Below are positions 10,391 through 61,850 of a stretch of 64,000 nt of DNA, piece after piece. A model generated the notes under the pieces. It had not been told where the DNA came from and made no database searches. It saw only the letters and a program-made list of their open reading frames with translations. Each line of letters begins with the position of its first letter. Positions within the stretch are counted from its first letter, which is position 1. The DNA is from Mytilus trossulus (Eukaryota), in assembly GCF_036588685.1 (NCBI RefSeq), contig NC_086380.1, forward strand, positions 50,220,001-50,284,000, in the 5' to 3' direction. Both the position numbers and the translations under genes were made by a program.

Positions 10391-10912
10391 ATTCATTAGA
10401 AATTTCTCCCGTAGGATATTCCTTCAGTGGTTCATGAAAATCTCTACTACCGTCAAACATAATGACAAATGTCCCACCGTGCTGAACAAATAACTGATGC
10501 GTCATATCATACGATCGTTGACCACCAAAGTCAACCAGATCTGAAGGGGCAATCTTGATTTTGTATTGACCACTCTTAACTTCTTTCAAAATGTCTTCAT
10601 GTACAGCGTATGCTTCAATTTTCTTTGTTTTTGGCAGACTAATTGAAGGCGTGTTTTTTGTTTTAGATTTGACGGTTTTTGTACTCGGTAAATCTTTAGA
10701 TTTTGTTAAACAAGCATCGGATAGTTGAGAAACTTTGGAACTGTAGCTGGCTTCGTTCCTTATAGCCACTAAATTTAATTCCAGATTATCAGTTCCAATT
10801 GGTGATGGCGCAATGTGCTGGTCCAGGTGGGTATCAGAACTTTGACATGTGCTAGTTTCACGAGTTGGCTTTCCGATTATAACTTTCGTCAGTACATTTT
10901 GACCTCTGTCTT
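10391..10912 (-). CDS. ANK-Roc gene, Roc GTPase exon with long insert and G3 (...SDLVDFGGQRSYDMTHQLFVQHGGTFVIMFD...)
   Basis: 522 nt, TTTTTAG acceptor, GTAAGT donor, phase 1/1; overlaps ORF 10365-10769; DFGGQxxYxxTHQLF at about 10488-10532 is the ROCO-type G3 signature. Confidence 0.93.
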
Positions 10913-12280
10913 CTAAAAAACAGTTACTTTTTTATATAGAAAATTAGTAAACACGTTTGAACATTTATCTGAGAGAACCACATGTATAACGAGTAAAAAA
11001 CAAAAATAAATCGAGGCAGACTAAATACAAAGGACATGTTAAGGACATCGACAGATGGATGTAGGCAAGCAACACAATCAATCCTTTTATGTATCATATG
11101 TTTTAAGTTTTAAAAGTCTTTAACTCACATAGACCAATTAGTAAATTGTTTTAAATAGAGATCCGTTTTCAGCATTCATTAAGTCTTGGAGAAGACAACT
11201 GTCATAGTAAAAAAAGTAGTAAATAAATTGAATGAACCTTAATCGTTTCCTTGAAAAAGTTCTTTACCGCAAGATTTTGTTTTACATATGGACCATCACC
11301 TAGACAGGAAATCATCATGCGAGGCAAAATCACATCTCATCATATAATGTTATTGGACACCTTTTCATTTGATTTTTATAGACATAGGAAGATGTGGTGT
11401 GAGAGTGCCAATGAGACAAATCTCCATCCAAATAACAATTTAAAAATGTAAACCATTACATCTGTTTGGGTGGTTTCATTTACCAAAGCATGGATTTCGC
11501 CATTGCTTTATTTAAGTATACCAAGTGTATTACCAACTCCTTCTTAAACCCTTTTTAAATTGATTGAATCTCTCTTAAAATCTTAACCATAGTATGCAAT
11601 TGTGTACGTCCTTTTATTTTCAGTATAATTATATTCGAGGTTTCCTTTCGCATATCATATGCTTGTTTATATTTACATTTATATCTGCCTCATTAGCACC
11701 TAATTAGAATGTGATGAAATGTCCTCAGAATCTTCATACAAAGCCAAAGTGCACGTTTGAGTTTGTCCTTTTGTAGTTTTCCGTACCAAAACTTGAATTT
11801 TGCGAAGTGTAAGTTTCAAAAGTCACAGTTCCTCTTGTTATAGACGTGGTCGTTTATAAAATACGATTAGTTTATTAATTTTTCGACTCAGTTCTGATTA
11901 TTTGAATGATGAGTGCAGCATGATAAGTAGGAACTGCTTCACCCCTCGAAACCATAGAATTAAACCCGGTTTTAAGTCTTTACTTTCTTATGCAATGTTT
12001 TTCTATCATTTGTCGTTTTTTCAATTTCTTTTGCCCACATTGTGGTCGACTTCATTACTTAAACTGCTTGATTGCCTTTTTGGTACATAGTATATTCATT
12101 CAATCACTATCAGTTTGATAAATTGTACAACTATTTTTTTAATCGACAATAATAATACAGTTATTAAATTAATGTTTGACAACACAGTTTAAATACAGTC
12201 CGACTACTTAATGTTTTCTTTAAGTATGACACATGCGTATGCATCGTCAATCATTACGGTTTACAATTTTCAAACTTTAC

Positions 12281-12535
12281 CTCCTTGTAAGGGAACCATC
12301 TCAAACGTTTCCAAGTTGATACCGTTACGCCCAAAGTGTATGACTAATCCATCTGTTGATTGCCATGTACGCGGTATTGGGCTACCAATAAGAACACTTG
12401 CTAGGGTGGACTTTCCACATGCACAACTTCCACAAAGGAATACTCTATTTTCAAACGACTCATATGTGCCAGTGGATAGCAGTTTGAGAAATTCTTCAGA
12501 GGTGCCAGCAAAGGGAAATGCGTTATCAGGGTTTA
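12281..12535 (-). CDS. ANK-Roc gene, Roc GTPase exon with G1 and G2 (...YESFENRVFLCGSCACGKSTLASVLIG...TWQSTDGLVIHFG...)
   Basis: 255 nt, CTTTTAG acceptor, GTAAAG donor, phase 1/1; beta-strand plus GxxxxGKST at 12405-12440; STxG switch I. Confidence 0.92.
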
Positions 12536-14642
12536 CTAAAAGGATAAATTTAGAGTCAAAATAAGTTCAATGTTTTTTTATTTAGCTGTATGCTGCATGA
12601 TATGTGAATATTGAATTCAGTAATCTTAGGCATTATATTCGTCATTTATTACAATATTTTGATTTTAAAACGAAGGAATTGACTGCAGTTTTCGATGTCA
12701 TAAAGCAAGATCATTGTTTACCAGTGACAATAGATTAATTGTGATTATGTTATCTTATGATGCGAGATGGATGTTGGTGAAAAACTACGTCAAAAATATA
12801 TTGGTTGAATACTTCAGCCCTTATCGTTTAATATAACAACGACTACTCAGACTGTGCCCAACAAATCAGCTTATTTCAAGTTTAGATAATATCATATTCG
12901 TCTTATCTTTAATTTTTTCGGATGTGTCCTATTCCCAATTGAGTAATTTCAACTGAATGTGGATTCGCATGATGAGTGATAACAGCTTAATATAAGACAC
13001 CAACCCTGTCTGGGTTTCAAGTCTCGCTCCCCGGCAATTCATTCAATCCCCTAAGATTTAGTTTGTCAACTTGTTTGAACATTTATTTGGGCGGGGTCAA
13101 TTTACCTTATTTACACATTAGACTGTACTGTTTATCGAAACTTCGGAAACACTAAACCCTGTAATTTATATCGGAGAAGAGGGCAATATATCCCTCAAGG
13201 TCTCACTTTGACTTTAAGATGAAGAACAGCAATTAATAGAGCTGTTCTGTTATTTTCAGTATTTTCATTATTGCAATGCGCATACTGATTGTGAGCCATA
13301 GATGGATACTCGATATTCTTTTTTTCCTTTAACACATCAACATTTAAATGTCCATTCGTGTCAATTTTCCTTTAAAACATTGTACAAAAGGAATATACCA
13401 TACTGTATGGGCAGAAGGATATTTGCAATTTTATCTAATGAAAGACGCTGAATATGGGAGAACTTAAAAAACATACATGTCTGAATAGTGGTAACTATAA
13501 CAACTAATTGATGATAGTACAAAAAATAAGAACTGAAATTTCCGAAGAAAAATGGAAACGATAATAAATTGATTCTATTGTTTTTCAAACATGACCCAAC
13601 ATTTCAGAAATTATTTAACTGCATGCGTTGAATTGTCCAATTAACCAATCATAGTGACAAAATAAAAACATATAGTATTCACTCGAATGAATCAGACAAA
13701 TCAAAAGACACACTTGACAAGGGTCACATTTGTTTCAAATGAAGATTGATGATGCTGATTTTTAGTGAAAAGATGCTTTGACACTAGATGAAATGTATGT
13801 TCAAACGAATACAGTTTTTTTTTTCAGAAAGAAACTGTATAAAACAATTCCAAAAAGGGACATATTTATAAAAACAAAGGGTATCTGTACATTGTAAAGA
13901 AACATGTTGTAAGGTATTTACTTTAATAAACAACATTACTTCTCTGAATTGCCAAAACAGTATATAGGTTAGATATATAACACTATTTGTGAACGGGTGT
14001 GTGTCAAAAAAATCCACAATATCGTAAAATTCCACCAAGGTTTAGAAAGATACATAGAAATATTAAATGATACCGTATTCTTGTATTTTTTGCGATTCTA
14101 TTTTACATATGACGTGGCTTTGTGCTAAGCCATCCCGTTATTGTGTAGTTGTGCTACGGTAGTTTTTTTTATTGTTGTATTTCGTGTTTGCTAGTGTGTT
14201 TTGTCTACAGACATGTCTGTGCTTCTTTATTACATGTTTGTTTGTTTTGGGGTGATAAGGATTGTGGCACAATGTTGACTGATGTGCCCTATTTTTGACA
14301 TGTTTACCTATTATATCTGTTTGTTTTGTTCACACATCGATGTTATTATCATGGTATTTGATACGACTGTCATACATGTTTTTAAACTGGATGTAATCCA
14401 CCATTTTCTACACAGGAAAATGCCTTTATCAAGTCAGAAATATGACAGTTGTTATCAATTCTTTCAATGTGTTTGAGCTTTTGATTATGCCATTTGATTA
14501 GGGACTTTCCGTTTTGAATTTTTGTTTTATTTCCCTTTTTAAATGAAAAAGAGAGAGCAGTGCAAACCTGTGTGAAATTGATCACTACTTTAAATAAGAA
14601 TTTATCCCGATGAGCAATGCCTTCCTCAAGAATAACATAATC

Positions 14643-16925: not shown

Positions 16926-17019
16926 CTCCATCATTTTCTGACGTCTCTTGTAGTGTTTCTTCTTGTTGCATAACTGTAGCAGTGTCTTTGTGGTCACTTT
17001 TGTCTTTGGCCATAGAAGA
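16926..17019 (-). CDS. ANK-Roc gene, acidic linker exon (SSMAKDKSDHKDTATVMQQEETLQETSENDG)
   Basis: Inside ORF 16810-17067; TTTCAG acceptor, GTAAAA donor; 94 nt phase 0/1, which bridges the phase-0 cap exon to the phase-1 Roc exon. Confidence 0.75.
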
Positions 17020-22201: not shown

Positions 22202-23595
22202 CCACTTTCATAACACTGATTTTTAGCATACTGAATATCATGATGTTTTTACTATAAGTTCAGGTTCTGATAAAAAAAAAATACACATTCAGTACAGAAA
22301 GAAGTGTTTCAATGAAAGTTTTCGTGTTTTCAGTCTAAGCAGAAATGATTTTGGAATGACATTATACAGGTTGAAAAGAGCTCAAATGAGTTTACTGGAC
22401 AGTGGTCACTTTATTGAATATTTCACTGTGTCATGTCGTGAAATTAATGCAGGTTCAATTTATAACACTGCACAAAACCGGTTCAACTCCTTTTGCAAGG
22501 CGAAAAAGAAAGACGAATTGTGAAGCCAATAAACAATATTTTTTTAATCTGAGCATGCAAATTGAAGATTACACTATATATTTTACATTAAATATATTTG
22601 CAGAATAAAAACTTTGGTAATGACAGTCCCCGACAATATATAAGTTGACTGTTTTCCCACTAATTCCACGTGTTTTACGTAGTAGGTTACTCGTAGTAGA
22701 CCACAATGCATTGTAGTTCATTGAGTCGATTGGTCAGTTTTTCAAGGCCATATTGGCCTTGTGTTTTGGAAATTACTATGCAAATATATTCTGACGTCAG
22801 AAAATCGACCTGTTAAAGATACACAATGAATACCAAGTGTTGCCCACTTTGATTAAATTACCAACATTTCCCTAAGTTAATCAAAATACTGAACCAAAAT
22901 TAAACCACTAATATCGATTTCATGAAATAACGAAAGACCGGTAGGGACATTCTGCATTGCTGTTGTTAAAATCTCTCTGTTCATTCTTGATATTTGTTTT
23001 ATCCAAGTCGAAATTTCGCTTTTTCAGGATTACATTTCTTTTTGCCCAGTTGATATTTCCCAATCCAAGGTGACATTTCTAACTTCCATATTGGAACTGC
23101 CAAATTATTCCTGAATGCAAACATTGAAGAGCTGGTATAACAAAAATTGGCGAAAAAGTTCTAAAGTCCTTCAGCTACTCATATTGAACTTTACAGCTAT
23201 CAGAGCTATAATCTTGTACTTGAACATTCCGTTGAAAATATGTCTACAAATCAAAAGTGACGACTCATGTCACCTATACTTTCACTTTCAATATTTACAA
23301 CCCAAAAAAGATACAATTTATGTAGTGAAATAAAACAAAGAAAATAAGTATAGCACTTAAAAACCTAAAAGAAACTAAAGATACATTTGGGTAAACAGTC
23401 TGAATGCGCATCTGATGCAACAAAAAGGGTTTTTGTTAATGCTAGTATTGATGATTACGTTACCTTCAGTAAATACGTAAATTTATCTGTCCCTGGTATC
23501 ACCGATTTCTCCGTTCGTCGACGCATTCAGCATTTTTTTTGTATTTTAATTGATCTTATCTACAAATGGACTTATACACCAACATGAAGCCTTAC

Positions 23596-23679
23596 CTTCA
23601 GAAGTTCTCGTAATTCTTCTTTTTCCTTTTCCGAATGCCAGTAACGTCTATTGACAATCTCAATCGGTGTTTTGTTGGC
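23596..23679 (-). CDS. ANK-Roc gene, C-terminal capping ankyrin-like exon (ANKTPIEIVNRRYWHSEKEKEELRELLK)
   Basis: Inside ORF 23572-23766; TTTCAG acceptor, GTAAGG donor, 84 nt, phase 0/0; KTP...ELL cap-like pattern. Confidence 0.8.
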
Positions 23680-30700: not shown

Positions 30701-31168
30701 TTTAAATGAAATTGTGTAAAAATAAAAATTGAAATAGATTATTTTGTTTTTTCAAAAAGGAAACAAACGCATTTTCCCCCGTCATCCTTCAATCTACAAT
30801 AGTAATACTCGCGAATGACAGTGAAAATGAACTATCTGAAATCGCACTGTGTATACACTGTAAGTTTATTCATTCTAATTGTTTTAAGAAGAATAAAACG
30901 AAGGCAATTAAACTAGACAAGTAAGGTCATCCAAGTATAAACAACTATCTGGAAGAAACAGACAAGTTGAACGATATGCATACGTTATCATTCTTCTTGT
31001 TTTTAATACAATGCTTATGCTTGATTCTCGATATTTTTAAGTATATTCGGTATTCTGATTATATAAGCAATACTTTGTGGACATTCAATTTGAATTTACT
31101 TTCCTATGATAAAGTACTATTACCGACTGCAAACTGTTGACTATTTTAGCAAATATAACACTTCATAC

Positions 31169-31270
31169 CTTATTTTTTTCCGCTGGATCTATGGTTGTTC
31201 TTTCTAATAACAGTTTGAATAATTCTGTATTTCCTCTTTGAACAGCTAAATGTAAAAGAGTGTCACCGTC
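31169..31270 (-). CDS. ANK-Roc gene, ankyrin exon 10, variant A
   Basis: Identical to 51639-51740, intact AG/GT. Confidence 0.88.
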
Positions 31271-37689: not shown

Positions 37690-37768
37690 CGTAATTCACG
37701 TGAATTTCACGTGAAAAACTGATTCACGTGAATTTCACGTTAAATTTTTCATGTGAAATTCACATGAA
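37690..37768. repeat. Palindromic TTCACGTGAA cluster (copy at about 44217-44295)
   Basis: Three exact TTCACGTGAA plus degenerate units. Confidence 0.75.
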
Positions 37769-38661: not shown

Positions 38662-38763
38662 CTTATTTTTTTCCGCTGGATCTATGGTTGTTCTTTCTAA
38701 TAACAGTTTGAATAATTCTGTATTTCCTCTTTGAACAGCTAAATGTAAAAGAGTGTCACCGTC
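38662..38763 (-). CDS. ANK-Roc gene, ankyrin exon 9, variant A
   Basis: Identical to 51639-51740, intact AG/GT; 6530 nt from exon 8. Confidence 0.85.
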
Positions 38764-41700
38764 CTGAAACAGAAAAGTTGAATAATTCACAGTACTGACA
38801 TGTATCTTACAATGTTCGCATAGAAGTCACTCCTTTGATAACTCGCTCTGCAACTTGATACAATTTAAGTTTATTATACAAGCACACTTATAAATACAAG
38901 GTTTACACCAGCAATTGTAGATTCATAAGTCGACCTGAAACCGACAACACAATTGAAAAGAGAATACAACGACAAAAAGACAGACAACTACCTACGACAA
39001 ACTACAAAGAGAACAGAAAAAATAAACAACACGAACCTCAAAATCTTTTCATTTGCAACATTAAATAACATTTTGAAAAAAAAACAATATGAAATGAACG
39101 AAAGGCTATTTATTATGAATGCATATACACATTTATGTTAAACTGTTTGCAAACGAATAAAAAAGACACGCTATATTTTTTGACAAAACATACATCTTGA
39201 ATAGAAATTTTGGTAAACAAAATGTTGGGTTCAAAATACCAACACATTTACTATGGCATAAGATTTTTTCTGATTTTTGATATTTATAAACATTGCTATG
39301 TTTGGATTCTCTTCTGTACTCCTTATTTTTTTACTTATCAGGTTATTTATATTTGTCATGGCAGATACAAAGGAAAAGAAAGCAACTAAGCTACATCCTG
39401 TACAAGATTGTCAAAATAAAAAATAAATGGCATATGAAAAATATATAGAGGTATGTCGATATCAATACGTTAACAATCTTTTGATTTGTCTGCATATCTT
39501 CTGTTTTTTCCTTGACAACCTTATGTATATTGGGAAGGTTGGAAAAGAAAGTACCGGGAACATTATCTGTACATCAGATATGCTATTTCTCATGAATGTA
39601 TAACTTATAATAATTTACTTCAAGCTTAAACTTATGAATGTACGCACAGAAGTTACCTTTTAATTTAGATAATGAATTGAACATCATACATAAATCTTTA
39701 CTGCTGAAATTTCAAATAACCTCAGTTGCTACATACGGTTAATAATCAATGTTTGTAATACATGAGCATCAGGAATATTTGAGATAAAAATCTTTTTACA
39801 GACATTGCCCCCCGATGTCTTGAGAAATACCAAAACTTAAGAAAATCAGAAACCAAAGGTTTGGAGAATATTTGAAAGTCTTTCTCATAATTTGATAGGA
39901 AAATATTCACTTTTGGTTTAATATGGTAATTCAGATAATAAAAAAAAAGTGCTGTTTTCCAAATAAAAATGATTTATTTTTCCTTCGGATGAAATAAAGG
40001 TAGAAAGGTACTCCTTGTTTACAGAATGTCACTTCTGGTTTCATTTGAATCTGATTACACAATGACTCTGACAAATAATTCAAAGTGCTTAAACATAAAA
40101 AAAAAATCAAAAATGGTTACTTTCGGTTTACTAAAGTTATTTTCTTGTTGACTTTCTCCAAGGTCATATTTCTGCAACCTGATGTAAAAGACCCTATGAC
40201 TTTATAATGTACCAAACAGTAACAAAAATACCAAACTCATAGAAATTTCAAAGCGGAAAGTCCAAAAGTTCAACCACACCAAACTCTGTAATAAGAAGTT
40301 ACAGCGAATGTGTAAATCTAAAAAGTCAAACTAAACTTTGACCTTGACTTCAATTTCCAGGTTATATGACAATGACTATAAATTAAAAGAGACCCTTGCT
40401 CCTATATATTGTTAATGAGTTATATCACCATACTCGTAATGTTTAACCTAAGGGAGGACTAAACTCTCATATGGAGTCTCCGGACAGCTTCAGTCCAATG
40501 ATATTCATAATCCTAAATATATAACGAGCAATTTGGTAACCCAAATTTGTCTTTTACGGTTTCGAAGGAGTAGTAGACACAAGAACAAACAGTGTTTGGG
40601 GAGATAACTCTTACAAACAAAATTGCTCGGTTAAACATTGACATTTTAAAAAGCGCATAAACTGTTCGATATCATATAAGAAAAAAAAATAACAATCAGA
40701 ACAAAAGCAATAGGACTTTCTATGGAAAAGTAGAAATATCTAATAATCAGAACAAAAGCAAAAGGTCTTTCCACGGAAAAGTTCAAATACGGTAACTATG
40801 TTAATCGTACCCAACTTATTAAAATTTCAACAGAGAAACCCATGGATCTGGTTATGTATGGTACATGTTTAGACTTTCGACTAGCAGACTATCTTCTATT
40901 AAGATTGTTATCATCAGAATCACGATTCAAAACTTAAATTCTACTAATTAGCTTTCATTCGAAATATTTAACATCGAGTGTACCAATGTTTTTATATCCA
41001 ATTGTTTTCCATTTAACCACCTACAACAACTATATATCGCTTCTTGAAACAAATAAATACAAGAGTCTATTCTATTTGCCCAGTTTTAAGAACAAACGTC
41101 TCACCAGATGTCAAAATTAATTGATGAAATGCAAATGACTGAATATGTGGTTCAGACATAACAAACGGTTTTACAACCTTATACCTATTTCTATTTAAAT
41201 GTGTAGTTGTTTCCATATATAATGCACTATTTTGCCCTAAGAAAACTATCACAGGGGTAAAAAACTAATTTATAACTTACGACTCAATCCCCAATATATA
41301 TCAAATGAATACAAACAAAATGTTATATAATTGCATTTTGCTATCAAATGCTACAAAATGTAGCGTCCCATTCGCCTAGGGTAGGATATTCTACCTCAAA
41401 TAACAATGTACGTGTAAGACATGAAAAGCCAACCGATACTATAAATGATCAATAAAAAGCAGCTTTATTAAAAGCTAATATTATTAGTAACGGTTATTAA
41501 CTAGTAAAAAAAATTTGAATGTGTGTTAAATAAATTTCAGTTTGCGCAAAATAATCAAATAACAAAAACTGTCAAAATCAGCTTCTCAATCAAGTCTGTA
41601 CTCTGAAATGAATCAAGTCAATCGATACACTCGATATATAGAACGTATGAACACAAATGTGAAAGTAAAAAACCCAAATGGCATTATAGTTGACAAGTCG

Positions 41701-44700
41701 GATTTTAGATAATTCTTACAAGTTAAAAGGCTAAATATGGATTGAATAAGATGCAGTAATGGCATCTGAATTATGTAATTATGTTGTAGATAGGAAGGAT
41801 CAAACCGCAAAATAAGCAATTATGCCAAAGTGGATATAAGTGTGACCAGTTTCGCTGTAAAATATACGCCGATAATGAATGACTGAAGGCTAATGTAAAA
41901 GTATTACTATAAATAATCGTGTAACCACACTGTCTATCTTTAAGAAAAAAACTATTTATGTTCCAAGATATGATATCAAATAGAATTGCATTCTCCAATT
42001 GCAACATCTAACAGAATAAATGCGAAAAAAAAATCACAATAAATGTCTATCATTCATTTAACAATCCAATATATATAAATTCCTTTTTTTTGCAAATAGA
42101 ATTAAACTACACACACGAAAATTATAAAATTTTTTTGTAAATGAGTCCAATTTCTGTTTCCTTATTTATTAATTTACTTTGGGATCTTCTCCCTTTCCTC
42201 TGTTTTTAAATAGATGATTTTTTTTTATCTAATATCATGGTTCTCTGAAGTCCTATAGTATGCATTTTTGTAAATATTGACAATGTATTTTCCCATAGGA
42301 ACTCCCTTTTTGGCTTAAACTGTAACACTTTTACTATGAAGTTTTGAAAAAAATCATATCCTAGAATGGAAAGTTCATATACACTTCTATTTTTGCAAAG
42401 ATCAAATAATAGGACTGTGCGGTATATTTTCAACGTTTATATGCCCCGAACTTCTAAGAATTCAAACTTACACTAAATTTCTTAACTACCCCTAACTCGA
42501 CTGTAGTGTTACAACAGATTTAAATATAAACAATATTCACATGTAAATATACTGGTAAACAAAATTTATTATCTATTAATAAATAAATTTGGTGTATTTA
42601 CTGTCTTCCGATTGGTTAAAAGTATGACTTTTATTTTCAATGTTGTCAATTTTTATGGCGAAACGCCCACTCTGACGTTGCGTATTCATACGCAAACATG
42701 TGTGTACGTTGTTATTGTTAATATGAATAATATAAAAAGTTCTTTGAGTCTTATGTTTGAAAGAAATTTATTTTTAAAGAATTTTATGGTTCAATAAATT
42801 CAAAAAAAAAAAATATTGCAATTCATTAAATATTCCAAATCTCCTAAAAAAAGGCGTGGTTTGATAAACATCTGTATTTACAAAAGGCAACCTCTACAAA
42901 CATTTATACAAATAGAAAACTCTCTAAAAACACTTTTTCTCACATAAATACTCACTTACAAAAATTATTGCCTTAAGGAAATCACTACATAGAATCTGAG
43001 TTTTCTTTGACTGTACATTTAATGTCTCCTCCAATGTTTTGATTTTTTAGAGAATTTGAAAGAAAATTTTAATTATTGCCAGCCTACCCTATTTGCATGT
43101 TTTCTGACAGAAAACATGTAAAATGGCTAGAACCGGTTTACAACTGTTCTAATAACATATTGAAAATATTTTAGAATATTGTAAATGTAATGTTTAGAAG
43201 TAAATCATTCCAACATTCAATATTATATAAATTATCCAATCTTGTCCTAGTTCCCTGTCCACATCTTACTGTATGCCTATTTGTCAATAAAAAATCACAT
43301 TTTCTGGCTCAAATGGTCAGTTAAGAATTCTTGTCACAACAGTATTATCTGTAACCATATATCTGACACAGTTTTAACTAATATATGAACTAGAAGGGTT
43401 AAAACAAAGTCATATTTGCAATAGTTGTATGTATGCAAAGACCAGTCTGATGTATAAATTCATGAAATGTTATAGAGATGACTTCTAACATCTGATTTTT
43501 GCATAACTTCCAAGCACAATTATTGGTTTCTATAGAGAACCCTTTAAAATCATAAAATCATTGCATTTACAAGCTAAATTATTTGTTTTATGACCCAGGG
43601 GGTAGATAAAGGCAACAGTAGTATACCGCTGTTCAAAACTCATGAATCCATGGAAAAAAAACAAAATCGGGTTAACAAACTAAAACCGAGGGAATTTTAC
43701 GGCAATTTTCTCTGTCCCCCCCCCTTTTTAGGGCCTCAAATTCCCTAAATTGTTTTGCTGTTTCTAGCAATATGGAAAATTTAGTACATATTCAGGATAG
43801 AACACACTATTGTCAGTTTTGCCGATATATTTTTTTATATTTCCAGCTTGTATTTTTGTATGCCACGGTGACAAAAAAGCTGATTTAGGTGTTCATGATA
43901 TTTATTGGGATCGAGTCTTAAGTTATGAATTAGTTTCTTACCCCTGTGGTAGTTTTCCTAGGGCAAAACAGTGCATTATATATGGAAACAACTACACATT
44001 TAAATAGAAATAAATATAAGGCTGTAAAACCGTTTGTTATGTCTGAACCACATATTCAGTCATTTGCATTTCAAGCAGTCGAATGTACCTAATGTATAGT
44101 TGATTGGAAATCATAGTTATTTATGGCCACACAATGTGTTTAAATATTTTGCAAATTTTGTACACATGAATTAATTGTGAAATAAACATGAATTTTACGT
44201 TTATCGAGCTTATACACGTAATTCACGTGAATTTCACGTGAAAAACTGATTCACGTGAATTTCACGTTAAATTTTTCATGTGAAATTCACATGAATCGAG
44301 ATATTTTTGTTTTAAAGAAATTAAAGTGAATTCAGCCTCAATCACACAAATTTCACAGGATTGAGCTTATTAAAGTAAGTCAGTTCTAAGGTAATTCAAA
44401 TTCTGTTTTGATATATATAAGCATGAATACTATTCTTATTGGTCTTGATCATGTGTTCATACTTGCATTCTATTTTACTTTCTTGTATCCAAAATGTTTT
44501 GGTCTTAAACAAAGAAGTCAAAAAACTGCATCAGAGGCTATAAATAATAACCAGGGCTTTTTAGTTCACTCCGAGAACTTTTTGGGTTGTGTGCGAGTAT
44601 CAATCATTTTGTTGTGAATGATTTATGGACTGTGATCATTCATAGAAGATATTTGCACTGATGTATTATTGATTTGAGTTGATTTTCATAATGTATGTAC

Positions 44701-45191
44701 AAGTCATATTGTGTGGTCATCAGTTTTGGCAGAAACCAATCAAAAACGATTGAAATAAATTATTTTGTATTTTCAAAAAGGAAAAAAAACGCATTTTTTT
44801 CCAATCATACTTTTTTCTACAATAGTAATACTGGCGAATAACAGTGAAAATGAAATATCTGATTTCGCACTTTGTATACACTGTAAGTTTATTCATTCTA
44901 ATTGTTTTAAGAATAATAACACGAAGGGAATTTAACTAGACAAATAAGGTCTTCCAAGTAAAACAACTGTCTGGAAGAATCAGACAAGTTGACCCGATAT
45001 GCAAACGTTATAATTCTTCTTGTTTTAATACATAGCTTATGCTTTACCCATTGGTATTTTTAAGTATATTCGAGATTCTGATTACATTGGCAATACTCTG
45101 TGGACATTCAGTTTGAATTGTCTTTCAAATAATAAAGTACTATTACCGATTGCAAACTGTTGACTATTTTAGCAAATATAACACTTCATAC

Positions 45192-45293
45192 CTTATTTTT
45201 TTCCGCTGGATCTATGGTTGTTCTTTCTAATAACAGTTTGAATAATTCTGTATTTCCTCTTTGAACAGCTAAATGTAAAAGAGTGTCACCGTC
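45192..45293 (-). CDS. ANK-Roc gene, ankyrin exon 8, variant A
   Basis: Identical to 51639-51740, intact AG/GT. Confidence 0.87.
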
Positions 45294-47656
45294 CTGAAAC
45301 AGAAAAGTTGAATAATTCACAGTACTGACATGTATCTTACAATGTTCGAATAGAAGTCACTCCTTTGATAACTCGCTCTGCAACTTGATACAATTTAAGT
45401 TTATTATACAAGCACACTTATAAATACAAGGTTTACACCAGCAATTGTAGATTCATAAGTCGACCTGAAACCGACAACACAATTGAAAAGAGAATAAAAC
45501 GACAAAAAGACAGACAACTACCTACGACAAACTACAAAGAGAACAGAAAAAATAAACAACACGAACCTCAAAATCTTTTCATTTGCAACATTAAATAACA
45601 TTTTGAAAAAAAAACAATATGAAATGAACGAAAGGCTATTTATTATGAATGCATATACACATTTATGTTAAACTGTTTGCAAACGAATAAAAAAGACACG
45701 CTATATTTTTTGACAAAACATACATCTTGAATAGAAATTTTGGTAAACAAAATGTTGGGTTCAAAATACCAACACATTTACTATGGCATAAGATTTTTTT
45801 CTGATTTTTGATATTTATAAACATTGCTATGTTTGGATTCTCTTCTGTACTCTTTATTTTTTTACTTATCAGGTTATTTATATTTGTCATGGCAGATACA
45901 AAGGAAAAGAAAGCAACTAAGCTACATCCTGTACAAGATTGTCAAAATAAAAAATAAATGGCATATGAAAAATATATAGAGGTATGTCGATATCAATAAC
46001 ACAATAGAAAAGAGAATAAAACGACAAAAAGACAGACAACTACCTACGACATACTACAAAAAGAACTGAAAAAATAAACAACACGAACCTCAAAAACTTT
46101 CAATTTGTAACATTAAATAACACCTAATTTACTGAAGACAGAAAACAATGAATATACACAATAAATCAGCAGTATGGCAATTTACATTTCAATAAATGCT
46201 GTTAGTGCTATTTCAGAAACTTCATCTTGAAAACAAAAAATCAATATGAAATGAATGAAAGGCTATTTATTACGAATGCATATACAAATTTATGTTAAAC
46301 TGTTTGCAAACGAATAAAAAAGACAGGCTATATTTTTTGACAAAACATACATCTAAAATAGAAATATTAATATTGGTAAACAAACTGTTGGGTTCAAAAT
46401 ACCAAAACATTTACTAAGGCATTTAATTTCTTCTGAATTTTGATATTTCTAAACATTGCAATGTTTGGAGTCTCGTCTATACTCCTGATTTTTACTCATC
46501 AGGTTATTTATATGTTTCATGGCAGATACAAAGAAAAAGAAAGCAACTAAGCTACATGATTGTGTTTATTCAAAATAAAATAAAAATAAATGGCATATGA
46601 AAGATATATATAGAATACGTCAATATCCATATGTTAACAATATTTTCATTTAGCTGCATAGCTTCAGTTTTTCCTTAACAAACTTATGTATATTAGGAAG
46701 GTTGGAACAGAAATTACCGGGAACTTTATCTGGATATCAGAAATGATATTTCTTCTGGATGTAAAACTTATAATTATTTTACTTCTCAATGTACGCACAG
46801 AAGATACCTTAAGTGAATTCAGCCTCAATCACACACATTTCACAGGTTTGCGCTTTTTATAGTAAGTCAATTCTAAGCTAGCACAAATTCTGTTTTGATA
46901 TATATAAGCATGAATACTATTCTTCTTGGTCTTATCATGTGTTCATACTTGCATTCTATTTTACTTTCTTGTATCAAACATTTTTTGGTCAAAGAAGGCA
47001 AACAACTGCATCACAGGCTATAAATAATTACCAGGGCATTTTAATTCACTCCCAGAACTTTTTTGGTTGTGTGCGAGTCTCAATCCTTTTTTTGTGAATG
47101 ATTTATTGAAGATGTTTGCACTGATGTATATTTCATTTGAGTTGAATTTTATCATGTATGTAAAAGTCATGATGTGTGGTCATCATTTTATGACACAAAC
47201 AAATCATAAACGATTGAAATAAATTATTTGTATTTTCAAAAAGGAAAAAAAAACCCAATTTTTTCCAATCATCCTTTATTCTGCAGTAGCAATACTGGCG
47301 AATGCAGTGAAAATGAAATCTGATTTTGCACTTTGTATAAACTGTAAGTTTATTCATTCTTATTGTTTTACGAATAATAATACAAAATGAATTTAACCAA
47401 ACAAATAAGGTCATCCAAGTAAACACAACTATCTGGAAAAAACAGACAAGTTGACCCGATATTTATACGTTATAATTCTTCTTGTTTTAATACATGATAG
47501 CTTATGCTTTACCCATTGGTATTTTTAAGTATATTCGAGATTCTGATTATATTGGCAATTCTCTGTGGACATTCAGTTTGAATTGTCTTTCCTATGATAA
47601 AGTACTATTACCCACTGCAAACTGTTGGCTATTTTAGCAAATACAACACTTCATAC

Positions 47657-47758
47657 CTTATTTTTTTCCGCTGGATCTATGGTTGTTCTTTCTAATAACA
47701 ATTTGAATAATTCTGTATTTTTTCTTTGAGCAGCTAAATGTAAAAGAGTGTTTCCGTA
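47657..47758 (-). CDS. ANK-Roc gene, ankyrin exon 7, variant C (YGNTLLHLAAQRKNTELFKLLLERTTIDPAEKNK)
   Basis: 102 nt, intact splice sites, 7 nt differences from variant A. Confidence 0.88.
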
Positions 47759-49600
47759 CTGAAACAGAAAAGTTGAATAGTTCACAGTACTTACATGTAT
47801 CTTACAATGTTCGCATATAAGTCACTCCTTTGATAACTTCTTCTGCAACTTGATACAATCTAAGTTTATTATACACGCACAGTGATGAATACAAGTTTTA
47901 CACCAGCAATTGTGGATTCAGAAGTCGATCTGAAACCGGCAACACAATAGAAAATAGAATAAAACGAAAAAAAGACAAACAACTACCTACGACAAACTAC
48001 AAAAAGAACTGAAAAAATAAACAACACGAACCTCAAAAATTCTCCATTTGCCACATTAAATAACACCTAATTCACTGAAGACAGAAAACAAAGAATATAC
48101 ACAATAAATCAGCAGTATGGCAATTTACTTTTCAATAAATGCTGTTAGTGCTGTTACAGATACTTTATGTAAAAAAAACCAAACAATATGAAATGAACGA
48201 AAGGCTATTTATTACAAATGCATACACAAATTTATGTCAAACTGTTTGCTAAAGAATAAAAAAAAAACACGCGTTATATATTGACAAAACATACATCTAA
48301 AATAGAAATATTAATATTGGTAAACAAACTGTTGGGTTCAAAATACCAAAACATTTACTAAGGCATTCAATTTCTTCTGAATTTTGATATTTCTAAACAT
48401 TGCAATGTTTGGAGTCTCGTCTATACTCTTGATTTTTACTCATCAGGTTATTTATATTTTTCATGGCAGATACAAAGAAAAGAAAGCAACTAAGCTACAT
48501 GATTGTGTTTATTCAAAATAAAATAAAAATAAATGGCATATGAAAGATATATATAGATTACGTAGATATCAGTATGTTAACAATATTTTGATTTAGCTGC
48601 ATAACTTCAGTTTTTCCTTAACACGTTTATGTATATTAGGAAGGTTGGAACAGAAATTACCGGGAACTTTATCTGGACATCAGAAATGATATTTCTTCTG
48701 GATGTAAAACTTATAATTATTTTACTTCTCAATGTACGCATAGAAGATACCTTAAGTGAATTCAGCCTCAATCACACACATTTCACAGGTCTGCGCTTAT
48801 TATAGTAAGTCAATTCTAAGCTAACACAAATTCTGTTTTGATATATATAAGCATGAATACTATTCTTCTTGGTCTTATCATGTGTTCATACTTGCATTCT
48901 ATTTTACCTTCTTGTATCCAACATTTTTTGGTCAAAGAAGGCAAACAACTGCATCACAGGCTATAAATAATTACCAGGGCATTTTAATTCACTCCCAGAA
49001 CTTTTTTGGTTGTGTGCGAGTCTCAATCCTTTTTTTGTGAATGATTTATTGAAGATGTTTGCACTGATGTATATTTCATTTGAGTTGAATTTTATCATGT
49101 ATGTAAAAGTCATGATGTGTGGTCATCATTTTATGACACAAACAAATCATAAACGATTGAAATAAATTATTTGTATTTTCAAAGAGGAAAAAAAACACAT
49201 TTTTTTTCCAATCATCCTTTATTCTTCAGTAGCAATACTGGCGAATGCAGTGAAAATGAAATCTGATTTTGCACTTTGTTTACACTGTAAGTTTATTCAT
49301 TCTAATTGTTTTACGAATAATAATACAAAGGGAATTTAACTAGACAAATAAGGTCATCCAAGTAAACACAACTATCTGGAAAAAACAGACAAGTTGACCC
49401 GATATTTATACGTTATAATTCTTCTTGTTTTAATACATAGCTTAATATGCTTTACCCATTGGTATTTTTTAGGTATATTCGAGATTCTGATTATATTGGC
49501 AATTCTCTGTGGACATTCAGTTTGAATTGTCTTTCCTATGATAAAGTACTATTACCCACTGCAAACTGTTGGCTATTTTAGCAAATATAACACTTCATAC

Positions 49601-49702
49601 CTTATTTTTTTCCGCTGGATCTATGGTTGTTCTTTCTAATAACAATTTGACTAATTCTATATTTTGTCTTTGAACAGCTAAATGTAAAAGAGTGTCACCG
49701 TC
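49601..49702 (-). CDS. ANK-Roc gene, ankyrin exon 6, variant B (DGDTLLHLAVQRQNIELVKLLLERTTIDPAEKNK)
   Basis: 102 nt, intact splice sites, 5 nt differences from variant A. Confidence 0.88.
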
Positions 49703-49811
49703 CTGAAACAGAAAAGTTGAATAGTTCACAGTACTTACATGTATCTTAAAATGTGCGCATAGAAGTCACTCCTTTGATAACTTCTTCTGCAACTTGATAC
49801 AATCTAAGTTT

Positions 49812-49957
49812 AGTGGATCTCAATGCTCGTCAACTTCGTACTTTATTTAGCTTTTTCTAAACTTTTTTGGATTCGAGCGTCACTGATAAGTCTTTTGTAA
49901 ACGAAACGCCCGTTTCGCGTATATATAAAATGTAGTCCTGGTATCTATGACGAGATT
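49812..49957 (+). mobile_element. Retrozyme-like insertion with mutated hammerhead, present in one 2-kb unit only
   Basis: GAGCGTCA CTGATAA GTCTTTTGTAAAC GAAA CGCCCG TT; interrupts TAAGTTTA|TTATACAC, which is intact in sister units. Confidence 0.75.
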
Positions 49958-51595
49958 GTTATTATACACTCACACTTATGAAAACAAGTTTTACACCAGC
50001 AATTGTGACTTCATAAGTCGACCTAAAACCGACAACACCATAGAAAAAAAACTACAAAAAGAATGAACAACACTAACCACAAAAACTTTCAATTTGTAAC
50101 ATTAAATAACAACAATTTACTGAAGACAGAAAACCATTAATATGCACAATACATCAGCAGTATGGCAATTTACTTTTCAATAAATGCTGCTAGTGCTATT
50201 TCAGATACTTCATTTTGAAAAAAAAACCAATATGAAATGAACGAAAGGCTATTTATTTTAAATGCATATACAAATTTATGCTAAACTGTTTGCAAATGAA
50301 TAAAAAGACACGCTTTATTTATTGACAAAACATACATCTAAAATAGAAATATTAATATTGGTAAACAAACTGTTGGGTTCAAAATACCAAAACATTTACT
50401 AAGGCATTTAATTTCTTCTGAATTTTGATATTTCTAAACATTGCAATGTTTGGAGTCTCGTCTATACTCCTGATTTTTACTCATCAGGTTATTTATATTT
50501 TTCATGACAGATACAAAGAAAAAGAAAACAACTAAGCTACATGATTGTGTTTCTTCAAAATAAAATAAAAATAAATGGCATATGAAAGATATATATAGAA
50601 TACGTCGATATCCATATGTTAACAATATTTTGATTTAGCTGCATAGCTTCAGTTTTTCCTTAACAAACTTATGTATATTAGGAAGGTTGGAACAGAAATT
50701 ACCGGGAACTTTATCTGGACATCAGAAATGATATTTCTTCTGGATGTAAAACTTATAATTATTTTACTTCTCAATGTACGCATAGAAGATACCTTAAGTG
50801 AATTCAGCCTCAATCACACACATTTCACAGGTCTGCGCTTATTATAGTAAGTCAATTCTAAGCTAGCACAAATTCTGTTTTGATATATATAAGCATGAAT
50901 ACTATTCTTCTTGGTCTTATCATGTGTTCATACTTGCATTCTATTTTACCTTCTTGTATCCAACATTTTTTGGTCAAAGAAGGCAAACAACTGCATCACA
51001 GGCTATAAATAATTACCAGGGCATTTTAATTCACTCTCAGAACTTTTTTGGTTGTGTGCGAGTCTCAATCCTTTTTTTGTGAATGATTTATTGAAGATGT
51101 TTGCACTGATGTATATTTCATTTGAGTTGAATTTTATCATGTATGTAAAAGTCATGATGTGTTGTCATCATTTTATGACACAAACAAATCATAAACGATT
51201 GAAATAAATTATTTGTATTTTCAAAAAGGAAATAAAAAACATTTTTTTCCAACCATCCTTTATTCTTCAGTAGCAATACTGGCGAATGCATTGAAAATGA
51301 AATCTGATTTTGCACTTTGTATACACTGTAGGTTTATTCATTCTTATTGTTTTACGAATAATAATACGAAGGGAATTTAACTAGACAAATAAGGTCATCC
51401 AAGTAAAGACAACTATCTGTAAAAAACAGACAAGTTGATTCCGATATTTATACGTTATAATTCTTCTTGTTTTAATACATAGCTTATGCTTTACCCATTG
51501 GTATTTATAAGTATATTCGAGATTCTGATTATATTGGCAATTCTCTGTGGACATTCAGTTTGAATTGTCTTTCCTATGATAAAGTACTATTACCC

Positions 51596-54247
51596 ACTGC
51601 AAACTGTTGACTATTTTAGCAAATATAACACTTCATACCTTATTTTTTTCCGCTGGATCTATGGTTGTTCTTTCTAATAACAGTTTGAATAATTCTGTAT
51701 TTCCTCTTTGAACAGCTAAATGTAAAAGAGTGTCACCGTCCTGAAACAGAAAAGTTGAATAATTCACAGTACTGACATGTATCTTACAATGTTCGCATAG
51801 AAGTCACTCCTTTGATAACTCTGCAACTTGATACAATCTAAGTTTATTATACACGCACACTTATGAATACAAGTTTTACACCAGCAATTGTAGATTCATA
51901 AGTCGACCTGAAACCGACAACACAATTGAAAAGAGAATAAAACGACAAAAAGACAGACAACTACCTACGACAAACTACAAAGAGAACAGAAAAAATAAAC
52001 AACACGAACCTCAAAAACTTTCTATTTGCAACATTAAATAACATTTTGAAAAAAAAAACAATATGAAATGAACGAAAGGCTATTTATTATGAATGCATAT
52101 ACACATTTATGTTAAACTGTTTGCAAACGAATAAAAAAGACACGCTGTATTTTTTGACAAAACATACATCTTGAATAGAAATTTTGGTAAACAAAATGTT
52201 GGGTTCAAAATACCAACACATTTACTATGGCATAAGATTTTTTCTGATTTTTGATATTTATAAACATTGCAATGTTTGGATTCTCTTCTGTACTCCTTAT
52301 TTTTTTACTTATCAGGTTATTTATATTTGTCATGGCAGATACAAAGGAAAAGAAAGCAACTAAGCTACATCATGTACAAGATTGTCAAAATAAAAAATAA
52401 ATGGCATATGAAAAATATATAGAGGATATGTCGATATCAATACGTTAACAATCTTTTGATTTGTCTGCATATCTTCTGTTTTTCCTTGACAACCTTATGT
52501 ATATTGGGAAGGTTGGAAAAAAAAGTACCGGGAACATTATCTGTACATCAGATATGATATTTCTCATGAATGTATAACTTATAATAATTTACTTCAAGCT
52601 TAAACTTATGAATGTACGCACAGAAGTTATCTTTTAATTTTGATAATGAATTGAACATCATACATAAATCTTTACTGCTGAAATTTCAAATAACCTCAGT
52701 TGCTACATACGGTTAATAATCAATGTTTGTAATACATGAGCATCAGGAATATTTGAGATAAAAATCTTTTTACAGACATTGACACATGATGTCTTGAGAA
52801 ATACCAAAACTTAAGAAAATCTGAAACCAAAGGTTTGGAGAATATTTGAAAGTCTTTCTCATAATTTGATAGGAAAATATTCACTTTTGGTTTAATATGA
52901 TAATTCAGATAATAAAAAAAAAGTGCTGTTTTCCAAATAAAAATGATTTATTTTTCCTTCGGATGAAATAAAGGTAGAAAGGTACTCCTTGTTTACAGAA
53001 TGTCACTTCTGGTTTCATTTGAATCTGATTACACAATGACTCCGACAAATAATTCAAAGTGCTTAAACATAAAAAAAAATAAAAAATTGTTACTTTCGGT
53101 TTATTAAAGTTATTTTCTTGTTGACTTTCTCCAAGGTCATATTTCTGCAACCTGATGTAAAAGACCCTATGACTTTATAATGTACCAAACAGTAACAAAA
53201 ATACCAAACTCATAGAAATTTCAAAGCGGAAAGTCCAAAAGTTCAACCACACCAAACTCTGTAATAAGAAGTTACAGCGAATGTGTAAATCTAAAAAGTC
53301 AAACTAAACTTTGACCTTGACTTCAATTTCCAGGTTATATGACAATGACTATAAATTAAATCAAGACACCCTTGCTCCTATATATTGTTAATGAGTTATA
53401 TCACCATACTCGTAATGTTTAACCTAAGGGAGGACTAAACTCTCATATGGAGTCTCCGGACAGCTTCAGTCCAATGATATTCCTAATCCTAAATATATAA
53501 CGAGCAATTTGGTAACCCAAATTTGTCTTTTACGGCTTCGAAGGAGTAGTAGACACAAGAAAAACAGTGTTTGGGGAGATAACTCTTACAAACAAAATTG
53601 CTCGGTTAAACATTGACATTTTAAAAAGCGCATAAACTGTTCGATATCATATAAGAAAAATAAAATAACAATCAGAACAAAAGCAATAGGACTTTCTATG
53701 GAAAAGTAGAAATATCTAATAATCAGAACAAAAGCAAAAGGTCTTTCCACGGAATAGTTCAAATACGGTAACTATGTTAATCGTACCCAACTTATTAAAA
53801 TTTCAACAGAGAAACCCATGGATCTGGTTATGTATGGTACATGTTTAGACTTTCGACTAGCAGACTATCTTCTATTAAGATTGTTATCATCAGAATCACG
53901 ATTCAAAACTTAAATTCTACTAATTAGCTTTCATTCGAAATATTAAACATCGAGTGTACCAATGTTTTTATATCCAATTGTTTTCCATTTAACCACTTAC
54001 AACAACTATATATCGCTTCTTGAAACAAACAAATACAAGAGTCTATTTTATTTGCACAGTTTTTAGAACAAACGTCTCACCAGATGTCAAAATGAATTGA
54101 TGAAATGCAAATGACTGAATATGTGGTTCAGACATAACAAACGGGTTTACAACCTTATACCTATTTCTATTTAAATGTGTAGTTGTTTCCATATATAATG
54201 CACTATTTTGCCCTAAGAAAACTATCACAGGGGTAAGAAACTAATTT
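51596..54247. repeat. Further partial copy of the first 2.6 kb of the 6.5-kb unit
   Basis: Collinear with 38620-41272; ORF 54043-54228 matches 41067-41252; diverges after 54247. Confidence 0.9.
51639..51740 (-). CDS. ANK-Roc gene, ankyrin exon 5, variant A (DGDTLLHLAVQRGNTELFKLLLERTTIDPAEKNK)
   Basis: 102 nt, TTTCAG acceptor, GTATGA donor, phase 0/0. Confidence 0.9.
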
Positions 54248-55099
54248 AAATTCTCAAACCCAACAATTTTTTTCTAATAAGATACCGTTAAATCCAAAGA
54301 TTACATTTCGTAACGAATTAAGGAGTCACCATGTTGACTTGCTGAAATCAGTAAATATGCGAATAATACAATAGAAAATAAAATAAGATAAAACAACCCC
54401 AAACTAAAAAAATCATTTTCATGTAATATTAAACGAATTTCGATGGTTCACGTCACGGAAAACCATTCAGATTTAGCGTTTTCTTTTGTATGCCGTCATG
54501 TTTGGAATGAATAAATACACCCAATGCATGAATAGACTTTTGCGGAATTTTATTTTATTTCGATTTTGTAGATTTTTCCGAGCTCTTGTGCATTATTTTT
54601 TTTTGTTATGCAACCGAATAAGAATAAAAGTGATGTATTCTTTTTTTCAATTGCAATTTTTAAAACAATAAAATCGGCATAACTCTTCGGATAGGTTCCG
54701 ATACATGTGGAGTTACATGGAAGGTAAATTGTAACAACCATAATTATATATATTTCTGAGTCTGCGCTACGTATAGATATATTGATAATCTTATCACGGT
54801 GCTATTTACAAAGCAAAAGAAGCACATCATATAAGAATGACACATAGGTAACGGATAACATACATTTATTATTTTAAACAAAATATTGTATTATATAAGT
54901 GAGGTGTATAAGATATGCTGGTAAATACTTGTTGACATTCAGTTTGATTGATGTTGATTGCAGATAATTCAAACCTGTTTCTTATTTTTAATTCGGCTTT
55001 TTTTTTTTTATATAAAACCAACAATGCTAATCAGCAACTGAGTTTTTGAAAGGGTCCGGCAATGTGTCTGACAATATCTTGTGTGTAAGTGCATTTATT

Positions 55100-56899: not shown

Positions 56900-57001
56900 C
56901 TTATTTACTTTGTTTGGATCTATAGCTGTTTGTTCTAATAGCAATTTGACTATGTCGAGATATCCACATTGAACAGATAAGTGTAAGAGAGTACCATCAT
57001 C
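56900..57001 (-). CDS. ANK-Roc gene, ankyrin exon 4 (DDGTLLHLSVQCGYLDIVKLLLEQTAIDPNKVNK)
   Basis: 102 nt, TTTTCAG acceptor, GTACGA donor, phase 0/0. Confidence 0.88.
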
Positions 57002-58730: not shown

Positions 58731-58791
58731 GATTATCAAACTGTGGAAATGTTCAAGTGTGTACAGTCCTGGTACGAAAAACATTACATAC

Positions 58792-58893
58792 CTTATTTAC
58801 ACAGTTTACATCTATATCTGTTCTTTCTAATAAAAGTTTGACTGTGTCAACATATCCCCGTTTAACAGCTGAGTGTAAGGGAGAGTCGCCTCT
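58792..58893 (-). CDS. ANK-Roc gene, ankyrin exon 3 (RGDSPLHSAVKRGYVDTVKLLLERTDIDVNCVNK)
   Basis: 102 nt, TTTTCAG acceptor, GTATGT donor, phase 0/0, consensus ankyrin repeat. Confidence 0.93.
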
Positions 58894-59337: not shown

Positions 59338-59438
59338 TTGATTTTCTTGATTTGCATCTATAATTCTTATTTCTAATAACATTTGGATTATGTTTAGGTG
59401 TCCATGATAACAGCTGTGTTAAAAGGAGTGTAACCATA
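59338..59438 (-). pseudogene. Dead ankyrin pseudo-exon (YGYTPFNTAVI-[1-nt deletion]-GHLNIIQMLLEIRIIDANQEN)
   Basis: Ankyrin-like translation after restoring one base; acceptor AG lost (TTTAA); donor replaced by adjacent repeat at about 59126-59337. Confidence 0.7.
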
Positions 59439-61181: not shown

Positions 61182-61283
61182 CTTATTCTGTTGATTTGGG
61201 TCTATACGTGAGATTTTTAATAGCAATTGGACAATTTCAAGTTGTCCTCTTCTAGCAGCTATGTGTAAAACACTGTCCCCATC
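61182..61283 (-). CDS. ANK-Roc gene, ankyrin exon 2 (DGDSVLHIAARRGQLEIVQLLLKISRIDPNQQNK)
   Basis: Inside ORF 61104-61340; TTTCAG acceptor, GTATGG donor, 102 nt, near-consensus ankyrin repeat. Confidence 0.93.
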
Positions 61284-61748
61284 CTGAAACATAAAGATTG
61301 AATGATATTCAGTATTTACGCAAAAATGTAAACAATACATGAGCCTGCTTGATATTCAGTTTAATACCAACATTATATTACTGGTAGGTTAAAGATACAA
61401 CTAATGTTGTCGGTTTTAACAAACTATGTCATTAAATAAGTAATATGTAAGAGTTATGTTGAAAACTCTTTGTGGAAGTTAAATTTGATGGTTGTTGATG
61501 AGATATTATTCCACCTGACTCGATTTGTCAATTAAATCCGTGTTTGTCTCTATAAAACAACCATTACCAAAAGCAAACGGATTCGAAAAAAAACAGACGA
61601 TTGGAAAGCCGTAGAATAACTTTACTTCTTCCTTTTTCTCTGAGTAGTAAGTTTATTGTAGGATGGGTACATACAATACAATGTAAAAATGTGTTTGATA
61701 GTTTTCTAAGCCGATTGTTCCACAACTGAGAAGTAGTACATTCCATAC

Positions 61749-61850
61749 CTTATATGTTCTTGATGGATCTATAGTTGTTCTTGCTATTAATAATTTGGCT
61801 ATTTCGAATAGTTCTGTTTTTACAGCCAAGTCAAATGGAGTGTTCCCATC
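61749..61850 (-). CDS. ANK-Roc gene, ankyrin exon 1 in window (DGNTPFDLAVKTELFEIAKLLIARTTIDPSRTYK)
   Basis: 102 nt, CTTTAG acceptor and GTATGG donor, phase 0/0, open frame, G-x-T-P ankyrin motif. Confidence 0.85.

Follow-up and report, generated by a model that had tools for sequence, protein, structure and literature searches.

ROCO proteins such as LRRK2 and DAPK1 are medically relevant, and their sensor ends are poorly understood. DAPK1, a metazoan ROCO, carries ankyrin repeats, Roc, COR and a C-terminal death domain in this order, without leucine-rich repeats (LRR). The Roc-COR tandem is also present in LRRK1, LRRK2 and the C. tepidum Roco protein, with a G4 motif of the T-H-x-D type. The vertebrate ankyrins ANK1-3 combine a long ankyrin array, largely made of single-repeat exons of 99 nt, with a C-terminal death domain. 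Bivalves possess very large and variable innate-immune gene sets. In brown algae, the N-terminal repeat sensor of LRR-ROCO genes is made of equal-length phase-0 exons encoding one repeat each, and the expanded family has been proposed to encode immune receptors; in Ectocarpus these frame-neutral exons undergo local duplication and differ in number between recent paralogues (PMC3341825; PMC11378527). Lineage-specific expansions of death-domain and STAND proteins (NLR-like, nSTAND) have been described in sessile marine invertebrates (PMC8195603), and ROCO-TIR/death proteins in Aplysia (PMC9334734). Here we describe a probable ROCO gene in a stretch of 64,000 nucleotides of Mytilus trossulus (RefSeq assembly GCF_036588685.1, contig NC_086380.1, positions 50,220,001 to 50,284,000), hereafter called the window.

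Our results suggest that the window contains the central part of one large minus-strand gene which leaves it at both ends. The encoded protein is likely to be a ROCO protein with the organization ANK(n)-cap-linker-Roc-COR-DD-DD, where ANK stands for an ankyrin repeat and DD for a death domain. This protein resembles a DAPK1 that lacks the kinase and carries one more death domain.

The window was scanned mechanically for 102-nt open frames bounded by AG and GT; the plus strand yielded 27 candidates and the minus strand 42. Ten of the 42 minus-strand candidates are ankyrin repeats, with one 34-residue repeat per phase-0 exon. Each exon opens with the D-G-x-T hairpin of its repeat. A pyrimidine tract and (c/t)ag come before every exon, and every exon closes with AAG, followed by gta. 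All seven exons compared with the Pfam Ank profile match it (E 2e-9 to 9e-4), six of them above the gathering score. The ten-exon observation is thus correct and far beyond chance. Since the exons of the array are equal in length and symmetric in phase (0-0), any subset of them stays in frame. In the order of the gene, they are:

61749..61850, minus strand, ANK exon of unique type, 102 nt, phase 0-0
61182..61283, minus strand, ANK exon of unique type, 102 nt, phase 0-0
58792..58893, minus strand, ANK exon of unique type, 102 nt, phase 0-0
56900..57001, minus strand, ANK exon of unique type, 102 nt, phase 0-0
51639..51740, minus strand, ANK exon of amplified type A, identical to 45293, 38763 and 31270
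49601..49702, minus strand, ANK exon of amplified type B, 97/102 nt identical to A, 3 amino acid changes
47657..47758, minus strand, ANK exon of amplified type C, 95/102 nt identical to A, 4 amino acid changes
45192..45293, minus strand, ANK exon of amplified type A
38662..38763, minus strand, ANK exon of amplified type A
31169..31270, minus strand, ANK exon of amplified type A, final full repeat before the cap

We then followed the exon chain beyond the array, including 30 kb of flank on each side of the window (negative coordinates lie to its left). Downstream exons were located exon by exon with tblastn, using relatives obtained from a phmmer search. The other exons of the predicted chain are the following:

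66914..67015, minus strand, eleventh ANK exon, upstream and beyond the window
23578..23679, minus strand, C-terminal capping half-repeat exon, 102 nt, phase 0-0
16926..17019, minus strand, linker exon, 94 nt, phase 0 to 1, ending in ...ENDG as in the M. edulis relative P0157
12281..12535, minus strand, Roc exon 1 (Roc-G1), 255 nt, phase 1 to 1, with the P-loop GxxxxGKS and switch I
10391..10912, minus strand, Roc exon 2 (Roc-G3), 522 nt, phase 1 to 1, with a low-complexity insert and then DFGGQ (G3)
-9784..-9890, minus strand, Roc exon 3, 107 nt, with the G4 motif THSD, preceded by a 20.2-kb intron
-10935..-12179, minus strand, COR exon, 1245 nt, a single exon of 415 residues
-14060..-14090, minus strand, micro-exon before DD1, 31 nt
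-14602..-14864, minus strand, first death-fold exon (DD1), 263 nt
-16857..-16884, minus strand, micro-exon before DD2, 28 nt
-20705..-20997, minus strand, last death-domain exon (DD2), 293 nt, followed by TAA

The phases of the cap, linker, Roc-G1 and Roc-G3 exons are consistent, and their order is colinear with the Mytilus proteins P0157, P0058 and P0322. With Mytilus proteins as queries, tblastn is colinear across ANK, cap, linker, Roc, COR, DD1 and DD2. No LRR exon was found between ANK and Roc, either in the window or in these three relatives. Both micro-exons were predicted from phase mismatches and from the residues of the relatives, and were then found with the expected peptide and good splice sites. 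Altogether, the 21 delimited exons are open, have canonical splice sites and are mutually consistent in phase; their summed lengths amount to 4062 nt, or 1354 codons. A direct splice from the cap to Roc-G1 through an alternative phase-1 donor was also considered, and was dropped once the 94-nt linker had been matched to the relatives. No large transposon open reading frames were found in the window.

The identity of the domains was analyzed at the level of motifs, profiles and folds. The Roc motifs are found in the expected order, with G1 (GxxxxGKS) in exon 12535-12281, G3 (DFGGQ) in exon 10912-10391 and G4 (THSD) in Roc exon 3. A family profile built from 20 members and compared with the PDB matches the Roc-COR of LRRK2 (E 1e-9) as well as the C. 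tepidum and M. barkeri Roco proteins. The same profile matches the death domains of CRADD, FADD and ankyrin (E 5e-8 and weaker), together with RIPK1 and PIDD. Searched against the PDB as a single sequence, the COR exon gave no match. Its AlphaFold model (pLDDT, the predicted local confidence, 84.7) has as best Foldseek match 3dpt, the COR of the C. tepidum Roco protein (E 3.7e-12, TM 0.70), followed by LRRK1 and LRRK2. The DD1 exon is modelled as a six-helix bundle (pLDDT 87) for which the 14 best matches are all death domains, among them RAIDD with a TM of 0.78 and a root-mean-square deviation of 1.6 A.

These data bear on an earlier reading of the window, made from its letters without database searches (the sequence-only reading). 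It had reported ten 102-nt phase-0 exons of one ankyrin repeat each, which the mechanical scan, the splice signals and Pfam Ank recover on the minus strand, precisely where the span given in that reading would place them. It had also joined them in frame to a cap, a linker and Roc without LRR; this junction agrees with the phases and with the colinear Mytilus relatives. ROCO membership, likewise proposed there, is strengthened by the COR that follows Roc and by its fold match to the C. tepidum COR. The 658-residue product given at the time needs correction: the exon chain within the window is recovered, but the product is a fragment because the gene leaves the window at both ends. The COR, the tandem death domains downstream and the further ANK exons upstream of the window had not been part of that reading.

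Like DAPK1, the mussel gene places ankyrin repeats ahead of Roc and a death domain behind COR. However, it encodes two death domains instead of one, carries an insert of about 110 residues inside Roc, and has each of its 34-residue repeats on its own exon; moreover, its family counts at least 100 members whereas DAPK1 is a single gene. We found neither a kinase nor a calmodulin-binding region in the window, in the 30 kb upstream, or in the close relatives P0157, P0322, P0003 and P0149, although a kinase exon might lie farther upstream. LRRK1, LRRK2 and the C. tepidum Roco protein give the best profile and fold matches, but the mussel gene differs from them by the absence of LRR, kinase and WD40 and by its output, a pair of death domains. 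The ankyrins ANK1-3, for their part, carry ZU5-UPA and spectrin-binding modules instead of Roc-COR, and are few, conserved and not lineage-expanded.

The Roc insert is a Ser/Thr/Lys-rich region of low complexity (window 10590-10880, minus strand) located between switch I/beta2 and G3. Its position is conserved in the Mytilus relatives, and it is unusual among Roc domains.

The ankyrin array itself bears the marks of repeated duplication and of exon loss, for which two further features have to be listed:

30728..54248, strand not assigned, zone of nested tandem exon+intron duplications, with units of about 2 kb and 6.5-7.5 kb and identities from 77% to 99.6%
59341..59430, minus strand, decayed ankyrin pseudo-exon, with a recognisable repeat, a frameshift and stops, and without a clean AG..GT frame

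The duplication units are 77-96% identical, apart from one 6075-bp tandem pair (33399-39467 and 39926-45998) which is 99.59% identical. Six of the ten ANK exons are recent tandem exon+intron duplicates, a point that goes beyond the sequence-only reading. Four of them are identical at 102/102 positions, and the other two differ at 5 and 7 positions. The 500 nt flanking the identical exons differ by 5-9%, so that the probability of finding no difference in the exons themselves is 1e-4 to 7e-3 (Poisson). Identical exons within diverged flanks indicate that the exons are under purifying selection or have been homogenised by conversion. In the young copies, the amino acid changes fall at positions 1, 3, 10, 13, 15 and 18, and the nucleotide differences of the divergent copies are mostly amino acid-changing. 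These changes show no clear concentration on the canonical ankyrin binding face, their numbers being too few for a test of positive selection. Exons also die, as indicated by the pseudo-exon between exons 61283 and 58893, which carries a frameshift and stops. Introns have recombined unequally again and again, and this has remodelled the array and left nested exon+intron tandem duplications.

A part of the exon count could be an artefact of the assembly, if the youngest tandem units, chiefly the 99.6% pair, were two haplotypes placed in series. The two members of the 6075-bp pair differ by about 0.4%, a level of difference that mussel alleles can also reach. However, neither the window nor the 60 kb of flanks contains N gaps, the other units (77-96% identical) cannot be alleles, and a like amplification is seen in paralogues and in the proteins of other species. 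We therefore regard this explanation as distinctly unlikely. It is still less probable that the six amplified exons are mutually exclusive, with one of them per transcript instead of all being included. Such splicing classically acts on tandemly duplicated exons that match in length and phase (PMC9013439; PMC9741552), but a choice between four identical copies would be pointless. Besides, the predicted proteins P0322 and P0157 contain near-identical repeats in series, and ankyrin solenoids tolerate extra repeats; we consider mutual exclusion very improbable.

The close relatives of the gene all come from Mytilus species, where they are annotated as uncharacterized, death-domain or "pats1"-like proteins; related genes are thus already known as annotated uncharacterized proteins in other Mytilus genomes. 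In the library searched, we found no paper on this group of Mytilus genes or on the dynamics of their exons, although one may exist elsewhere. The M. coruscus protein P0322 contains 25 of these 34-residue repeats, and its repeat types follow the order seen in the window. In this protein, the pair matching exons 61850 and 61283 is repeated about 5 times, and the counterpart of type A is present once. The M. edulis protein P0157 has another two-repeat unit, which is doubled. These patterns indicate that different exons have been amplified in different lineages. Other relatives with the same Roc-COR-death core carry different N-terminal modules, namely nSTAND3, HEPN-type, kinase, Ig and CARD.

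The gene is one of at least 100 Roc-COR-death genes that make up a lineage-specific, Mytilus-wide family. The Roc-G3 exon and the last death exon each have at least 150 matches in the genome, those of Roc-G3 being significant. For the COR exon, 101 matches were scored, the best of 558 candidates; nearly all of them are full length, and 94 of the 101 are free of stops. The best 150 of the 2103 matches to the ANK-exon profile all have E < 2e-8 and are isolated stretches of 33-34 residues in short open frames.

Four tandem paralogues (B, C, D and E) lie on the same strand as the window gene (A), with their Roc exons at 50.48, 50.62, 50.80 and 51.03 Mb. Like A, paralogues C, D and E have a conserved cap exon 7-13 kb upstream of Roc, whereas none was found in B. 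The numbers of ANK-exon matches upstream of each Roc exon are about 29 (A), 0 (B), 4 (C), 30 (D) and 26 (E); these are lower bounds, and the counts for the paralogues are taken from match coordinates only. The type-A ANK exon has 100% protein identity to one exon in paralogue D. Identities between A and its two nearest neighbours change along the gene:

Roc exon 1 of A, 100% identity to C, 92% to B
Roc exon 2 of A, 97% identity to C, 88% to B
COR exon of A, 81% identity to C, 94% to B
Last death exon of A, 71% identity to C, 99% to B

Gene A is a mosaic, its Roc exons being closest to C and its COR and death exons closest to B. The simplest reading of these values would be recombination or conversion between tandem paralogues, with the switch located within or near the 20.2-kb intron.

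In a family of this size, the window might hold a non-functional or unexpressed copy subject to birth and death, whose open exons would merely reflect its youth. Some family members are indeed broken (7 of the 101 COR exons have stops) and a dead ankyrin exon lies inside the array. The protein searches also returned no annotated product of the window locus, the search with P0322 being dominated by generic ankyrin proteins. Against this, none of the 21 exons is interrupted, all of them have canonical splice sites and together they sum in frame, the micro-exons are preserved, and identical exons persist in diverged flanks. Likewise, the COR and death exons are 6% and 1% away from the nearest paralogue, without disruption. 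A dead copy appears quite improbable to us, and we retain the reading of an intact gene.

Eighteen further ANK-exon matches are found upstream of the window (C8:50318420-50410513, minus strand). Among them is a second copy of the four-exon block 58893-67015, at a distance of 49.4 kb. The array extends upstream by at least one more ANK exon, and probably by about 19 if all these matches are included. In paralogues D and E, the equivalent ANK exons lie about 100-160 kb upstream of their Roc exons; together with the 25-repeat M. coruscus protein, these distances make one very long gene plausible.

The mussel gene shares its exon design and family expansion with the brown-algal LRR-ROCO genes. The Ectocarpus precedent had been invoked by the sequence-only reading, and the published work bears it out, with one repeat per frame-neutral exon. 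As in that system, the repeat exons are of equal length and frame-neutral, with eleven 102-nt phase 0-0 exons here and more than 150 isolated 34-residue matches genome-wide, and local duplication has made recent paralogues unlike in the number and identity of their exons. The mussel system nevertheless differs by its repeat, which is an ankyrin, by its animal host, by its death-domain C-terminus and by its independent origin. Also, the order of exons can be traced between Mytilus species, whereas it is scrambled in Ectocarpus. Several expectations of the sequence-only reading agree with the genome: a family expansion, as the genome has at least 100 intact COR exons and over 150 ANK exons; the 102-nt exon rule in paralogues, reflected in isolated 33-34 residue matches in short open frames; and a sensor varying by exon copy number, which holds in the evolutionary sense. 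That ankyrin exons have come and gone in evolution, inside the gene as well as among paralogues and among Mytilus species, is a solid observation.

Whether exons are also used combinatorially is a separate matter. Skipping, alternative inclusion or individual differences in copy number could let this one locus produce many variants of the sensor and turn the gene into a diversifying immune receptor, as proposed for the Ectocarpus LRR-ROCO genes. Every subset of the symmetric, equal-length array exons is in frame, ANK copy number differs between paralogues and between species, and several RefSeq relatives in other Mytilus have many predicted isoforms (e.g., X1-X12 of one M. californianus gene). 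In brown algae, comparable shuffling of exons has been documented for ROCO genes (PMC3341825; PMC11378527). However, four of the six amplified exons are identical, and skipping among them would give length variants only. The length differences of the predicted isoforms are not established as multiples of one repeat, and the extensive presence/absence variation of mussel genes is known genome-wide, not for this locus. We hold combinatorial use to be unlikely, and prefer to explain the array by exon birth and death over evolutionary time.

A broader proposal would be that the one-repeat ANK exon arrays of at least 100 mussel Roc-COR-death genes act as a diversity generator, which would parallel in an animal what has been suggested for the LRR-ROCO genes of brown algae. 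Through unequal crossing-over, exon skipping and mosaic recombination among tandem paralogues, each individual, perhaps each cell, would then have its own set of intracellular sensors, and these varied sensors would be wired to death-domain signalling. We consider this proposal unlikely, and both the immune-receptor and the splicing-diversity claims are taken here as hypotheses.

In our model, drawn by analogy with ROCO and STAND proteins, the protein would work in the cytosol as a STAND/ROCO-type switch. Its ankyrin solenoid would bind a ligand or partner, and the Roc-COR GTPase would respond to binding by a change in conformation or oligomeric state. A death-domain assembly leading to cell-death or NF-kB-type signalling could then be nucleated by the tandem death domains, while exon birth and death would, in the course of evolution, tune how long the sensor is and what surface it offers. 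A role of the gene in innate immunity or cell death is plausible. It is favoured by the large lineage-specific expansion, the swapping of N-terminal modules, the mosaic tandem clusters and the rapid turnover of the sensor. Such a pattern has been described for the death-fold expansions of sessile marine animals (PMC8195603) and for the Aplysia ROCO-TIR/death proteins (PMC9334734). The invertebrate STAND and death-domain expansions offer a parallel, with a repeat sensor, an NTPase switch, a death-fold adaptor, large expansion and variable N-terminal modules, except that the mussel switch is a Roc-COR GTPase and not a STAND ATPase.

Several points weigh against the interpretation presented above. 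At the level of single exons, Pfam scores stay below the cut-offs for Roc (19.7 bits vs. 27), for COR-A on the COR exon (E 1.5e-5, 25.4 bits vs. 35.3) and for Death on the last exon (15.1 bits vs. 22.6, with relatives at 34-44 bits). The profile check suggested by the sequence-only reading thus succeeded for Ank, above the gathering score in six of seven exons, and stayed below the cut-off for Roc and COR-A taken exon by exon; the ROCO identity is based on the family profile and on the modelled COR fold. The first coding exon was not identified in the window or its flanks, and the predicted exon chain is derived from splice signals and phases and from its homology with proteins predicted in other species of Mytilus. 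The 18 upstream matches may belong to the same gene, which would then span about 210 kb with about 29 repeats, or to a separate ankyrin gene located between ROCO genes. The 99.6% tandem pair, of 6.5 kb, could be an assembly error in a highly heterozygous species. Finally, the suggested tie to immunity comes from the architecture and the family expansion only.

The locus is a clean and datable case of a repeat sensor that grows and shrinks by exons in an animal ROCO gene. It combines nested duplications (77% to 99.6%), exon death and mosaic recombination with its neighbours, and the same process appears to act on other exons in sister species. If expression and variability are true, the family would be tractable for asking whether ROCO GTPases act as NLR-like immune switches in animals, and would offer a system for asking whether frame-neutral exon arrays generally yield receptor diversity.

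Some additional features were noted in the paralogues and in the upstream part of the array. Paralogue B (C8:50448496-50482625, minus strand) has Roc, COR and death exons without detectable cap or ANK exons of this type upstream, and may carry a different N-terminal module. Very regular tandem arrays of ANK-exon matches are found at C8:50922042-50931705 (minus strand) and C8:52420876-52431875 (plus strand), with spacings of about 760-1030 nt and 2724 nt; they suggest an even more active exon amplification in paralogues. ANK exon 61850-61749 has a copy with 100% amino acid identity 49.4 kb upstream, beyond the window. About 75 nt upstream of the acceptor of this exon, in the intron and in sense orientation, lies a type I hammerhead ribozyme motif (61925-61968, minus strand). 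It matches the model over its full length with 33.0 bits, the gathering score being 34 (E 4e-6 in a local scan and 2.4e-4 over the whole window), and is the sole one in the window.

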